From Macrostomum lignano (taxonomy: Eukaryota): a DNA stretch of 64,000 nucleotides. Position numbers and translations under genes: made by a program. The notes beneath the pieces were generated by a model, which was not told where the DNA came from, did no database searches, and saw nothing but the letters and a program-made list of their open reading frames with translations. Location: the NCBI GenBank assembly GCA_002269645.1, contig NIVC01000761.1, positions 1 to 64,000 on the forward strand. The letters are read 5' to 3'. This document shows, in pieces, positions 13,956 to 23,811 of the stretch. Each line of letters starts with the position of its first letter. Within the stretch, counting starts at the first letter, position 1.

Positions 13956-16900
13956 GAACAGCTGCTATTAAAGTGTTCCGATATCCCCATTCTCAGTCAG
14001 CACCTCAGCGCAACAATGTCGCCGCTGAACCTGACAGTCGGTTACTTCAGCCATCCGCCATTCTCAGATTTTGTTCACAGCCGCGTTGAAGGAGTCGTGT
14101 GGGAACTGCTGAGGCCGGCTCTGCTGGGCTGCCTCGGAAACCAGGTCAGCTTCATCATGCGCCGCTATCCGAATGAGAACGCTCTGCTGAGGGACGGGCT
14201 GGACCACTGCAACTTGAGCTTCCCCGTGACGCAGGGACCGCTGCACTCGGCTTTACCAGCCAGCTCATTTATCCCCGTGCTGAGGACTCCGGGTGAGACT
14301 GGGGAGAGGGCGAGAAGATGATGAGAAGTAGACAGATGTGGTGAGTTGGAGACAGATATGGGTGAGATGGAGACAGTGAGGGTGAGATGGAGACAGTGAG
14401 GGTGAGATGGATACAAATATGGGTGAGATGGAGACAGAGAGGGTGAGATGTAGACAGTGAGGGTGAGATGGAGACAGAAAGGGTGAGATAGAGACACAGA
14501 TGAGTGAGATGGAGACAGAGAGAGGTGAGATGGCGACAGAGGGGTGAGATGGAGACAAAGAGGGGTGAGATGGAGACAGTGAGGGTGAGATAGAGACATA
14601 GAGGGGTGAGATGGAGACAGTGAGGGTGAGATGGAGACAATGATGGGTGAGATGGAGACAGTGAGGGTGAGATGGAGACAATGATGAGTGAGATGGAGAC
14701 GAAGAGGGGTGAGATGGAGAAAAAGAGGGGTGAGATGGAGACAAAGAGGGGTGAGATGGAGACAAAGAGGGGTGAGATGGAGACAAAGAGGGGTGAGATG
14801 GAGACAAAGCGGGGTGAGATGGAGACAAAGAGGGGTGAGATGGAGACAAAGAGGGGTGAGATGGAGACAGATTTTCCTATTAGTTTTGTCCAACGCAGCC
14901 AAGATCTCTGTTTAGCTAGCTCAGCTTTTCACAGCACCAGCCATCAATGATGGTGTGCTCTCTTTATTAGCCTGCCCTGAAGAGAGAGAGAGAGAGAGAG
15001 AGAGAGAGAGAGAGAGAGAGAGAGAGAGAGAGAGAGAGAGAGAGAGAGAGAGAGAGAGAGAGAGAGAGAGAGAGTTAATACTGAAGTAGGCGCTTGAGAT
15101 TGAGAGCTGGAATTCAGTTCTGTGGATTGCATGGGCTCTGCCAATTAACAGATTAAACACCGCAGCTGCGCTCTGTGCTCTCAATGATTAACTACCCCGT
15201 CCCCCATCTAATGTCTCACATTTCTCCCATTTGCCTGTGCAAATATTTCCCAATTGTGTTTTCTGGGTTTTGATTGCCTGTGCGATAGAAGCCGACCCTG
15301 AATTGCCGGAATTTTGGTATTTATTGTCAGTTTATGAGTACACAGCTGACTAATGGTATCAGTTCATGAGTACACAGGTGACCAATGGTATCAGTTCATG
15401 AGTGCACAGGTGACTAATGGTATCAGTTCATGAGTACACAGCTGACTAATGGTATCAGTTCATGAGTACACAGCTGACTAATGGTATCAGTTCATGAGTA
15501 CACAGCTGACTAATGGTATCAGTTCATGAGTACACAGCTGACTAATGGTATCAGTTCATGAGTACACAGGTGACTAATAGTATCAGTTCATGAGTACACA
15601 GCTGACTAATGGTATCAGTTCATGAGTACACAGCTGACTAATGGTATCAGTTCATGAGTACACAGGTGACTAATAGTATCAGTTCATGAGTACACAGGTG
15701 ACTAATAGTATCAGTTCATGAGTACACAGGTGACTAATAGTATCAGTTCATGAGTACACAGCTGACTAATGGTATCAGTTCATGAGTACACAGGTGACTA
15801 ATAGTATCAGTTCATGAGTACACAGGTGACTAATAGTATCAGTTCATGAGTACACAGCTGACTAATGGTATCAGTTCATGAGTACACAGGTGACTAATAG
15901 TATCAGTTCATGAGTACACAGGTGACTAATAGTATCAGTTCATGAGTACACAGGTGACTAATAGTATCAGTTCATGAGTACACAGGTGACTAATAGTATC
16001 AGTTCATGAGTACACAGCTGACTAATGGTATCAGTTCATGAGTACACAGGTGACTAATAGTATCAGTTCATGAGTACACAGGTGACTAATAGTATCAGTT
16101 CATGAGTACACAGCTGACTAATGGTATCAGTTCATGAGTACACAGCTGACTAATGGTATCAGTTCATGAGTACACAGCTGACTAATGGTATCAGTTCATG
16201 AGTACACAGGTGACTAATGGTATCAGTTCATGCGTACACAGCTGACTAATGGTTTCAGTTCATGAGATCACAGTAGAAAATAAGTGTCAGTTCATGAGAT
16301 CACAGTGGAAAATAAGTGTCAGTTCCTGAGATCACAGTAGAAAATAAGTGTCAGTTCATGAGATCACAGTAGAAAATAAGTGTCAGTTCATGAGATCACA
16401 GTAGAAAATAAGTGTCAGTTCCTGAGATCACAGTAGAAAATAAGTGTCAGTTCATGAGATCACAGTAGAAAATAAGTGTCAGTTCATGAGATCACAGTAG
16501 AAAATAAGTGTCAGTTCCTGAGATCACAGTAGAAAATAAGTGTCAGTTCATGAGATCACAGTAGAAAATAAGTGTCAGTTCCTGAGATCACAGTAGAAAA
16601 TAAGTGTCAGTTCATGACATCAGTGTAGCAAAGCGGTGCAATTAAAAATCTAAGCATGCACTGCATATTATTAACTTGATTCTATCCGCGAGAGGTTATA
16701 CTTCAACAGTAGATAAAATCGTAATTCCGCTATGCCACTCGGATCACAGTGACTACTCGGAGATAGTTGAGGTCTCAGTACTGCCCAGACTGCATATACA
16801 GAGCAGGTGGTTCCTCTCTCGTGAACTCTCCTGTCACCCGTGATCCGGCTGCTCCGTGACTGAGCTCAACGGAGAATTCAGCTCAACGCACTCTATATTG

Positions 16901-22900: not shown

Positions 22901-23811
22901 TACAGATTCCCATCCATGATTGAGTACAGATCCCCATAACTGAGTAAAGATCCCCATTACTGAGTTCAGATCCTCATGACTGAGTACAAATCCCAATGAC
23001 TGAGTATAGATTCTCATGACTGAGCGTAGATCCCAGAATTTGAGCATAGATTCACCGAATTTGAGAATAAATCCCCGACTTTGAGCATAGATCTCCGAAT
23101 TTGAGTATAAATCTCTCAGTTTATAGTTAATTACAAAGTACTATTACAAAGTACTTGTAGTACTATTGTAGTACTATATATGTAGTACTGTAGTACTATT
23201 TTGTAGTACTATTACAAAGTACCTAACATGAAATTTACCGAATTTTAAGTACAGAACCATAGTGATAAGTTTCATACCATCGATACTTAAATAAAAATCT
23301 TAAAAGAAACCTTTTCGTTAATCCTGTATGACGCTGAAAATCACAAACAACATCTGACGTTCAAAACCAATTGAGTAAACTTATCGAGAAGAAAATGTCA
23401 GAGATTAATCCATATGCATGTTGGCCTCAATTGAGATGCACTCCTTTAAAATCCTAGCTAGCTACTGGGGTCTCAGAACAGTTTTCCGCAAGACTAATCC
23501 TCTCGACTCAAACTTGCCGCCCTCCTGGCTGATGAGCAGTCGAAGAGATGAACTGGAACTACGAGAGGCAGAAGACAGAGGCCGAGTTCGGCAGGCAGCT
23601 GGACTTCAAAAATTTCTACAGACACTCGAGGCGACTCAGCAAGACTTCCAGGCAGCAGAAGCGGAACCAAGACCTGACTGAGCCCGATCCGGCTCAGAAC
23701 AAAGACCTAACAGCTAATACTGATCGAGTTGCGGAAGTGAACGAAGGAGATGCTGCCAACTGTGACCGAGGAGCGAACGGCGCAGAGCTAAGTCACATGG
23801 GCAGCGATTGA
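13956..23811 (+). CDS. GluR0-like (prokaryotic-type iGluR architecture) ligand-gated K+-selective channel; exons 13956-14292, 17791-17930, 18367-18461, 20786-20948, 21023-21086, 21576-21934, 22503-~22650, last exon ~23493-23811 (frame uncertain); possible upstream exons 12320-12430 and 12529-12609
   Basis: Phase-consistent splicing from 13956 to 22503 gives S1-like [23 protein letters not shown]; M1 [22 protein letters not shown]; pore helix and filter [16 protein letters not shown]|YGDRSPKT; M2 [25 protein letters not shown]; S2 [17 protein letters not shown]; and a last [20 protein letters not shown]. Confidence 0.85.
14330..15074. repeat. 21-bp minisatellite (GGGTGAGATGGAGACAAAGAG) at 14330-14868, followed by (GA)n at 14979-15074
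   Basis: Direct reading; in a channel intron. Confidence 0.92.
15335..16620. repeat. Two adjacent related 32-bp minisatellites (TATCAGTTCATGAGTACACAGCTGACTAATGG; CATGAGATCACAGTAGAAAATAAGTGTCAGTT)
   Basis: Direct reading; switch near 16258. Confidence 0.93.
16965..17575. repeat. 22-bp minisatellite (GGCACCTCATTACACACATTAT)
   Basis: Direct reading. Confidence 0.92.
18780..19218. repeat. (CTCTCC)n microsatellite
   Basis: Direct reading. Confidence 0.95.
19590..20765. repeat. Compound (GATA)n then (GACA)n microsatellite, ending ~20 bp before the YGD exon acceptor
   Basis: Direct reading. Confidence 0.97.
21210..21500. repeat. 21-bp minisatellite (ATATGAGTACAGATTCCCAAA)
   Basis: Direct reading. 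Confidence 0.9.
22660..23120. repeat. 20-bp minisatellite (TGAGTACAGATCCCCATGAC), related to the 21210-21500 array
   Basis: Direct reading; shared TGAGTACAGAT core. Confidence 0.88.

Follow-up and report, generated by a model that had tools for sequence, protein, structure and literature searches.

Can an animal genome encode a member of the ionotropic glutamate receptor (iGluR) superfamily that has kept the pore of a potassium channel? The question is raised by a locus of the flatworm Macrostomum lignano (contig NIVC01000761.1 of assembly GCA_002269645.1), of which positions 1 to 64,000 of the forward strand were analyzed; this whole stretch of 64,000 nucleotides (nt) is called the window below. 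An initial annotation, made from the sequence of the window, had proposed at 13956-23811 a hidden animal gene with the architecture of the bacterial channel GluR0 and an intact K+ filter. The locus is a genuine multi-exon gene of M. lignano. Its product contains, in order, a lobe S1, a first membrane helix M1, a pore helix, the filter TMTTVGYGD, a helix M2 ending in FTAVVTAAL, a lobe S2, and a fourth transmembrane helix (TM4, or M4). As judged from sequence, the pore is a canonical K+-channel pore, and pore and lobes are both of the bacterial GluR0 kind; the predicted fold is that of an iGluR minus the amino-terminal domain (ATD).

Seven exons on the plus strand, between 14016 and 22685, join into one uninterrupted frame of 1281 nt, or 426 amino acids (aa):

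14016-14292, plus strand: exon 1, with the ATG start and a GTGAGA donor (phase 1); lobe S1, including the family-conserved Cys39 and FPVTQG...FIPVLRTPG.
17791-17930, plus strand: exon 2; final S1 strand (AVWLGPS), linker, and M1.
18367-18461, plus strand: exon 3; cytoplasmic linker between M1 and the pore (P), pore helix, and first half of the filter, TTVG (filter bases 18451-18461).
20786-20948, plus strand: exon 4; second half of the filter, (G)YGD (20786-20795), YGDRSPKT, inner helix M2, and start of S2.
21023-21086, plus strand: exon 5; first strand and helix of lobe S2, with the conserved NGS ligand-site motif.
21576-21934, plus strand: exon 6; remainder of S2, with the acidic loop, the hinge/ligand-site motif HHGALVEHF (GxLxDNY in the family), and the conserved-Cys helix GECLAENF.
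22503-22685, plus strand: exon 7; pre-M4 linker EVAQSLF, TM4, and the stop at 22683-22685.

All the introns are of the GT-AG type (AG|exon|GT at each junction) with compatible phases (0, 1, 0, 2, 0, 1, 0), and all 12 internal splice sites are canonical, so that about 1.3 kb of coding sequence extends over 8.7 kb with neither an internal stop nor a frameshift. The view that small exons scattered over kilobases of satellite would splice in phase has thus held, and the protein strings on which it was built, FTAVVTAAL included, lie where they had been placed on the plus strand. The choice of acceptor is ambiguous only for exon 2, where a second in-frame acceptor at 17749 would add 14 aa (a frame of 1323 nt and 440 aa). 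The family consensus SPGxVxLV favors 17791; the acceptor at 17749 might also serve, since the likeness to a paralogue (paralogue RTSPTAAGAVWL) reaches further upstream.

The junctions recur in distant animals. A Nematostella relative (P0047), mapped on its own locus, has introns at WLL|DR (phase 0), within TTV(G)|YGD (phase 2), at L|IGAASGS (phase 0), 14 residues past NGS (phase 1), and at PLK|NPT (phase 0), and these five introns share position and phase with introns 2-6 of the window gene. The exon 2 donor, after VWVL, is in phase 0 as in Nematostella and in the hemichordate Glandiceps. The exon 3 donor (GG|GTAAGG) splits the codon of the filter glycine as GG|A, in phase 2, across exons 3 and 4, identically in both; the split of the filter (VG|YGD) had been recognized in the initial annotation. 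The phase-0 donor of exon 4, after FFQTN, is the counterpart of HGAL|IGAASGS in Nematostella, and the phase-1 donor of exon 5 stands 14 residues past NGS, likewise in Nematostella and Glandiceps. In Glandiceps, four of the four introns compared are shared, the PLK|NPT junction being outside the comparison. The Macrostomum gene has one additional intron, within S1. With five introns matching a cnidarian orthologue, and with a match of the translated product to the Pfam family Ion_trans_2 at 60.1 bits, the gene model is, by its sequence, not a chance assembly.

The closest proteins in the databases are four fragmentary M. lignano UniRef entries, some identical over whole exons and others seemingly frameshifted or fused to neighbors; in one, P0062, which is 98% identical, the joins of exons 4, 5, and 6 fall at identical points. 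The public M. lignano models of the gene and its paralogues (P0001, P0002, P0003, P0004, P0062, and P0162) are fragments, frameshifted translations, or fusions, and their names (PBPe, SGF29 C-terminal, Inhibitor_I29, Secreted protein) are misleading. It is in this sense alone, of models that are fragmented, frameshifted, or fused, and misnamed, that the gene can be called "hidden". The pore exons, as had been observed, are absent from the list of open reading frames (ORFs) of at least 60 aa because they are too short: their in-frame pieces are 58 and 45 aa long, and no ORF that starts with ATG and reaches 40 aa contains the filter exon.

What, then, is the pore? Ion_trans_2 (PF07885) matches the product with 60.1 bits, exceeding the cut-off of 22.5 (E=1.9e-16), Ion_trans is also matched, and Lig_chan is matched just over threshold (32.8 bits against 30.8, residues 137-225); the Pfam matches lie on residues 135-225, and none falls on the lobes. 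In the PDB, the best sequence matches are the pores of K+ channels, over residues ~110-215, whether the query is the protein or a family profile made from animal sequences only. In our comparison with KcsA, the aromatic cuff WW, TTVGYGD, and the aspartate after GYG fall residue for residue in the same register, and the proline that follows GYGD is also present. A TXVGYG filter is thus set inside an S1-M1-P-M2-S2 frame, as in GluR0. Neither the gate motif SYTANLAAF nor a non-selective pore loop of the Q/R/N type occurs in the product, where TMTTVGYGD is found instead. The filter pattern T-[TS]-[VIL]-G-[YF]-G is kept in 132 of 141 sampled cluster representatives of the family, and the 25 residues checked among those conserved at 90% or more in animal alignments are all retained in this protein.

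For the lobes, profiles were prepared from family members by removing M1-P-M2 and linking S1 to S2, and these pore-less profiles were searched against the PDB. A profile of 14 sequences matches AncQR, an ancestral amino-acid-binding protein obtained by reconstruction (1.6e-6), as well as an arginine-binding protein and GlnPQ domains. With 27 sequences, the matches are to AncQR (5e-8), to the GluR0 core 1ii5 (5.6e-7, across both S1 and S2, so that the GluR0 lobes are detectably homologous), to the Nostoc GluR0 homologue 2pyy (1.3e-6), and to LAOBP (~2e-5). The exon 6 region is covered by the matches to AncQR, LAOBP, and the GluR0 core. Among the 58 PDB matches (E<10) of the 27-sequence profile there is no eukaryotic iGluR core and no core of AvGluR1, a rotifer receptor discussed below. 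The description of the lobes as solute-binding in type is therefore borne out at the level of profiles.

Two AlphaFold2 models were computed, one on a mixed alignment (predicted local distance difference test, pLDDT, 84.2; predicted template modeling score, pTM, 0.72) and one on an animal-only alignment (79.7 and 0.64), and they have the same secondary structure. Alternating strands and helices precede M1 and follow M2 in both; the helices 119-140, 152-167, and 180-213 form the module of M1, pore loop, and M2, and helix 385-413 is TM4. The product of exon 1, with pLDDT values of 89-96, can be aligned to the S1 lobes of hemichordate and cnidarian proteins and of GluR0-like proteins from bacteria. 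The models are uncertain only at residues 267-286, in the linkers, and at the extreme C-terminus. Residues 267-286, the only ones with pLDDT <50, belong to an acidic insert absent in the aligned orthologues of other phyla. This insert is encoded in exon 6 (21650-21745), is of low complexity and about 30 aa long, and is short in the paralogue P0003. With Foldseek, the best matches of both models are chains of AMPA, kainate, and delta receptors comprising the ligand-binding domain (LBD) and the transmembrane domain (TMD), with E ~1e-11 to 1e-12 over ~450 columns (~4e-12 for the top ones). The possibility that the fold was imposed by the bacterial sequences in the alignment was rejected, the animal-only rerun having given the same fold and the same matches. 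The models present the two-segment clamshell of class-F periplasmic-binding proteins, which the profiles also support, with an M1/re-entrant loop/M2 module and TM4, and the proposed S1-M1-P-M2-S2-TM4 layout, which is confidently predicted, superposes on iGluR LBD-TMD chains.

There is no LIVBP-like amino-terminal domain: S1 starts five residues past the first methionine, and the orthologues have only a signal peptide before S1. At the other end, the extra transmembrane helix of the initial annotation is helix 385-413, beyond which comes a basic tail. A hydrophobic TM4 is found at the expected distance in 117 of 141 family representatives, and the 30 residues that follow contain on average 6.25 Lys and Arg against 3.5 Asp and Glu. 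The N-x-S/T sequons of the window protein, five in all, lie in S1 or S2. Of 146 members, 117 share a cysteine in an S1 helix and 67 share one in S2, which suggests disulfides. Four features, namely the signal peptides of most members, the basic segment behind TM4, the sequons in the lobes, and the conserved cysteines, suggest that the lobes would be extracellular and that the pore loop would enter from the cytoplasmic side, by analogy with GluR0 and the iGluRs.

How far does this architecture extend among animals? The family was collected by an exhaustive hidden Markov model search with an animal profile; the counts are of cluster representatives, and names were recovered for a sample. At E<=1e-30 there are 704 representatives, the best 150 all being below 1e-62, and most matches cover the whole profile. 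Hemichordate, cnidarian, and Macrostomum relatives were also returned by word-indexed searches, but these, with 41 and 78 matches, fell far short of the family, and a pore-less profile searched in this way gave only 8. The named members come from Nematostella (with many paralogues), Hydra, corals, hemichordates, the annelid Owenia, the brachiopod Lingula, and Macrostomum, where several paralogues exist (P0002, P0003, and P0162). Every named member is an animal protein, labeled either "uncharacterized" or after a fused domain. In eight cnidarian proteins of 700-4,000 residues (P0123, P0124, P0127, P0128, P0136, P0137, and P0142 of Nematostella, and P0150 of Hydra), the module of LBD, K+ pore, and TM4 is C-terminal. 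The cnidarian clusters with long ectodomains have members annotated as FN3 or F5/8-type C domain-containing, some as "protein sidekick-1"; the fusion of a channel to an adhesion-type ectodomain is unusual. In a full-text literature search, with subscription literature outside its coverage, no published description of the animal family was found, so that this large family is apparently undescribed, in line with the "little-characterized" of the initial annotation.

A neighbor-joining (NJ) tree on BLOSUM distances, in which GluR0-like proteins represent the bacteria and from which canonical iGluRs are left out, places the 146 eukaryotic sequences in one group apart from the 21 bacterial ones; within that group, the Macrostomum protein goes with hemichordate, annelid, and brachiopod proteins. 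The shared introns and the tree grouping indicate that the gene predates the cnidarian-bilaterian split and is no recent transfer, a dating drawn from the sequences. In sequence, the lobes and the pore both resemble the GluR0-like and SBP_bac_3 proteins of bacteria more than the ligand-binding cores of canonical iGluRs, and one might suspect from this that a bacterial gene of the GluR0 type was recently acquired by horizontal transfer, or that the sequence is a bacterial contaminant. Such an origin is extremely improbable: the gene has seven or eight spliceosomal exons, with intron positions and phases common to cnidarian and hemichordate; named members are known from at least five phyla of animals; the protein possesses TM4 and a tail, which the aligned bacterial proteins are without; and its neighbors are ordinary animal genes. 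We consider it ruled out by introns, phyletic spread, and tree topology. The initial annotation had left the choice between an ancient gene and an old horizontal transfer; the ancient gene is clearly favored, and a transfer may have taken place earlier than the cnidarian-bilaterian split.

The comparison with known systems locates the protein between two named groups. With GluR0 (Synechocystis Slr1257) and the bacterial Group 1 proteins (SBP_bac_3, Lig_chan, and Ion_trans_2), it shares the S1-M1-P-M2-S2 order. The aligned bacterial homologues have the identical filter string TMTTVGYGD, are also without an ATD, and end M2 in an FTAxVTxxL-like sequence, not in SYTANLAAF. Unlike GluR0, the window protein is eukaryotic, encoded by an intron-rich gene, and provided with a fourth transmembrane helix and a cytosolic tail after S2, whereas channels of the GluR0 type have only two transmembrane helices and the pore loop, and the aligned bacterial homologues end shortly after S2; the family-conserved cysteines are absent from the aligned bacterial sequences. 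Prokaryotic forms are described as having neither M4 nor a carboxy-terminal domain (PMC12551409). GluR0 is their prototype: K+-selective, gated by glutamate, and devoid of both M4 and ATD. The single published animal receptor bearing the K+ signature is AvGluR1 (PMC12332018; bioRxiv 10.1101/2021.01.27.428399).

AvGluR1 of Adineta vaga (Janovjak et al. 2011) is likewise an animal subunit of the iGluR superfamily with M4 and TXVGYG, and is cited as transitional between GluR0 and modern iGluRs (PMC12332018; bioRxiv 10.1101/2021.01.27.428399). The likeness suggested by the initial annotation stands as far as M4 and this signature are concerned, but not as close kinship: the 58 matches mentioned above do not include the AvGluR1 core (PDB 4io3, a structure cited in bioRxiv 10.1101/2021.01.27.428399), and AvGluR1 is discussed in the literature as a rotifer receptor, whereas the present family occurs in at least five phyla. 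Judged by the profile search against ligand-binding cores in the PDB, AvGluR1 is an analogy and not a close relative of the window gene.

The canonical animal iGluRs (AMPA/kainate/delta/phi, NMDA, epsilon, and lambda) have the same LBD-TMD fold and topology, M4 included, and provide the best whole-chain structural matches, with Lig_chan slightly over the Pfam threshold. Unlike them, the window protein has no ATD and no SYTANLAAF, carries a K+ filter where they have the Q/R/N pore loop, and has a ligand-binding sequence nearer to bacterial binding proteins than to iGluR cores. Over residues ~110-215, the sequence comes closest to the two-transmembrane K+ channels (KcsA, Lmo2059, and the pore domains of Kv and KCNQ); in contrast to these, the pore here is placed between the halves of a presumably extracellular binding domain, would be inverted in the membrane, and is followed by an extra transmembrane helix. 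The ionotropic receptors (IRs) of insects and other protostomes (Croset 2010, PMC2924276) are iGluR relatives that have no ATD, have lost the canonical glutamate contacts, and have kept the clamshell; unlike the window protein, they have iGluR-type non-selective pores without a K+ filter and branched off inside the tree of canonical iGluRs. According to Ger et al. (2010), a glutamate-binding site is combined with a K+ filter "only in bacteria" (PMC2950845), a 2025 review opposes the K-selective GluR0 to non-selective eukaryotic iGluRs (PMC12551409), and a 2025 eukaryote-wide phylogeny of iGluRs mentions K+-type pores for GluR0 only (PMC12226733). The window protein is best placed within the iGluR/GluR0 superfamily and in neither named group, because M4 is present and the ligand-binding arginine lost, as against GluR0, and because the ATD, SYTANLAAF, and the Q/R/N loop are absent, as against the canonical iGluRs.

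What would such a protein do? In the reading that we favor, with moderate confidence, it is the subunit of a tetrameric channel of the iGluR superfamily that has retained a K+ pore, is gated by a small extracellular ligand, and is inhibitory. The bilobed clamshell, similar to SBP_bac_3 proteins and GluR0, would close on the ligand; the closure would pull on the linkers of M2 and of the pre-M4 segment, so that the gate formed by the helix bundle opens; and the resulting K+ efflux would hyperpolarize the cell, as expected of an ionotropic inhibitory receptor. Ligand gating, K+ selectivity, and an inhibitory role are all inferred.

Several points weigh against this reading. No transcript-derived identical protein was found among the matches of the database searches, and what may be said of function, for any member of the family, is drawn from sequence and predicted structure. 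The Pfam family SBP_bac_3 (PF00497) is matched neither by the single protein nor by 14 pore-less members scanned singly, although the family profiles match solved SBP_bac_3-type proteins at 5e-8 to 2e-5; of the matches that the initial annotation had expected from profile searches, those to Ion_trans_2 and Lig_chan were thus obtained, and that to SBP_bac_3 was not obtained with a single sequence. The remaining points concern selectivity, the ligand site, and the two ends of the gene, and each introduces a different explanation.

The presence of the filter is no proof of selectivity, because AvGluR1, with TXVGYG, was reported to be Na+-permeable (PMC3483616). That counter-example is itself disputed, because AvGluR1 is called K+-selective in another review (PMC11479355). 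On the strength of the Na+ permeability, and of a pore that is inverted in the membrane within an iGluR-like scaffold, the channel could be ligand-gated but poorly selective among cations, and excitatory or mixed in its effect despite the K+ signature. We find this rather improbable, since the match to K+ channels goes beyond the signature (WW cuff, register of the pore helix, GYGD, and the next proline) and the filter is widely conserved in the family. Moreover, a pore inverted in this same way is K+-selective in GluR0 (Chen 1999, cited in PMC12332018 and PMC13099474).

At the ligand site, the column of the carboxylate-binding arginine contains R in 15 of 21 bacterial relatives and in 7 of 146 eukaryotic members, and H in the window protein, the alignment of this S1 loop being uncertain. 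The acidic residue of S2 is D in 111 of 146 members and E here; the S/T of the NGS motif is kept in 98 of 146, and the S2 serine is kept here. The amino-acid site of the GluR0 type, made of the S1 arginine, the S2 Ser/Thr, and an aspartate, is thus not complete in this protein. The loss of the ligand-binding arginine makes classical agonist binding doubtful and a standard alpha-amino acid an improbable ligand. Insect IRs, which lost the canonical ligand residues and still bind ligands, offer a precedent for new ligand classes. The pattern of residues argues for a pocket that has been retained but re-tuned, as in those receptors, and speaks against glutamate.

The same loss, in nearly all the eukaryotic members, is what one would expect if the K+ channel were no longer gated by small molecules and were instead a leak, or under the control of a partner or of adhesion, with lobes that serve assembly, trafficking, or trans-cellular contacts. 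A role of this kind was long argued for the delta receptors. Many Nematostella paralogues carry one to four thousand residues of N-terminal ectodomain (FN3, F5/8-type C, "protein sidekick-1"), which would agree with such a role, and bacterial GluR0s are described as "passively open" in a 2025 review (PMC12551409). Nevertheless, the acidic residue of S2, NGS, and the whole clamshell are strongly conserved across phyla, which is hard to explain without binding, and the IRs bind their ligands without these residues. Lobes without a gating function are therefore unlikely in our view, and we keep to a channel gated by a small extracellular ligand.

The last explanation concerns this copy and not the family, and it depends on two segments outside the seven exons:

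13956-14015, plus strand: open stretch upstream of the first ATG, behind an AG acceptor (cccttacag|GAACAG, at 13955|13956), with no stop before 14016.
23540-23811, plus strand: probable exon 8, encoding the basic cytosolic tail, with the stop at 23809-23811; an open frame supported by homology.

The upstream stretch may be coding if an upstream exon exists, or it may be a 5' untranslated region behind a trans-splice acceptor; its translation resembles, by eye, the N-terminal segment of paralogue P0162. Exon 1, whose ATG precedes the first S1 strand by five codons, is without a signal peptide, whereas a hydrophobic signal-like N-terminal segment is present in 82 of 98 simple family members. In the 4.4 kb at 9500-13955, no convincing leader exon (ATG-started, hydrophobic, phase-0, and GT-terminated) was found, the only candidates being repeat-derived or implausible.

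At the 3' end, exon 8 is an open frame of 272 nt, 64% identical to P0003 and similar to P0162. In these paralogues, the protein runs straight on from the TM4 exon (KF|VERNWKY... in P0003, QF|IEHNWKY... in P0162), and Nematostella has a phase-1 intron at the site equivalent to the junction of exons 7 and 8. In the window gene, the conserved frame of exon 7 ends at G22662 and is followed by A22663 and then by GT at 22664-22665, whereas a phase-1 donor would require one base fewer; in its present form, the protein ends seven codons past the conserved frame, at 22685. Exon 7 has no in-frame canonical donor, and no GT/GC-AG pair joins the TM4 exon to 23540-23811 while keeping the conserved frame. 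Use of the GT at 22664, the only one available, was rejected: it is one base out of frame and gives a shifted tail of 47 aa. The splice of the public model P0001, apparently from a donor inside TM4 to an acceptor inside exon 8, was also rejected, since it deletes half of TM4 and contradicts P0003 and P0162. The public model P0004, which belongs to this gene, seems to be frameshifted. With A22663 removed, a canonical phase-1 donor appears and the junction is as in the paralogues and in Nematostella; A22663 reflects either an assembly error of one base or a true frameshifting lesion in this copy. The span given to the gene by the initial annotation thus starts at an AG acceptor and finishes at the end of exon 8; its implied continuity does not hold, as exon 8 is not joined to exon 7 by any canonical in-frame GT-AG intron.

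One could then see in this copy a decaying or non-functional duplicate in the polyploid, repeat-rich genome of M. lignano, with the family functional elsewhere. The absence of a signal peptide and of an upstream exon, the extra base before the donor with the conserved tail exon unreadable in frame, the satellites adjoining exon 7, and the existence of several paralogues would all fit. But the ~1.3 kb of coding sequence and its splice sites are intact, as are all the family-invariant residues checked; the tail exon is still open and close to its paralogue; and a single-base assembly indel is a plausible cause of the donor problem. Decay of this copy appears to us improbable.

The surroundings of the gene are dominated by repeats. 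The introns are mostly tandem repeats, kilobases long, as located with Tandem Repeats Finder (TRF):

14322-17576, no strand: satellites of intron 1 (TRF), with a 21-bp array at 14322-14871, (GA)n at ~14985-15075, a 32-bp array at 15327-16617, and a 22-bp array at 16939-17576.
18783-20764, no strand: simple repeats of intron 3, the intron that splits the filter (TRF), with (CCTCTC)n at 18783-19216 and (GATA)n/(GACA)n at 19590-20764 (1.2 kb).
21211-21491: 21-bp satellite of intron 5.
22667-23024: 20-bp satellite directly 3' of exon 7.

The last two have a common core, GAGTACAGAT, and look like related repeat families colonizing one gene. Long (GATA)n/(GACA)n arrays, or their complement (TGTC)n, are found at 327-489, 19590-20764, 23960-24219, and 53946-55062; the second of these accounts for the greater part of intron 3. 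At 47706-52038, a 4.3-kb array of a 21-bp satellite (~208 copies) produces long spurious ORFs in several frames; together with about 30 other arrays, it makes a sizeable share of the window tandem repeat.

The channel gene is flanked by ordinary animal genes. Upstream, at 12-4711 on the plus strand, several exon-like ORFs with filamin/ABP280 repeats (PF00630, E=1e-20 for 2742-3302) probably represent, by their sequence, a filamin-like gene. Tandem intron-poor ORFs with GNAT acetyltransferase domains follow at 7261-7953 and 9015-9530 (both minus strand), with satellites between them. Further downstream, overlapping ORFs with ankyrin repeats lie at 40902-41842 (minus strand; Ank_2, E=7.5e-36), adjacent to an ORF of 492 aa at 38312-39790 (minus strand) that has no Pfam match. 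No second copy of the channel was found within the 64-kb window.

What the locus means goes beyond one flatworm gene, and its interest lies more in a large, conserved, and unstudied family. We offer tentatively, as a serious possibility that we would not yet call probable, that the family is an undescribed metazoan class of channels: gated by an extracellular ligand that is not an amino acid, K+-selective and hyperpolarizing, older than the cnidarian-bilaterian split, expanded in cnidarians, and a living intermediate between GluR0 and the iGluRs. Such an intermediate would combine a K+ pore and bacterial-type lobes with an M4 and a cytosolic tail already present. It would have undergone a massive expansion in cnidarians, in some cases with giant adhesion-type ectodomains, and would have been retained in hemichordates, annelids, brachiopods, and macrostomid flatworms. 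The hypothesis that iGluRs arose when a binding protein was fused to an inverted K+ channel now rests on bacterial GluR0 and one rotifer receptor, and recent reviews regard eukaryotic iGluRs as non-selective and the K+-filter forms without M4 as prokaryotic (PMC12551409, PMC2950845). An intron-conserved animal family with a K+ pore, bacterial-type lobes, and M4 would give the fusion hypothesis many testable intermediates. For annotation, the locus illustrates that gene predictors break such genes in repeat-rich genomes and that the products are named in databases for unrelated fused neighbors (SGF29, Inhibitor_I29) or for ectodomains (sidekick-1). For animal physiology, fast ligand-gated K+ inhibition would be a possible new signaling modality, with many copies in Nematostella and Hydra, where expression and physiology are directly accessible.

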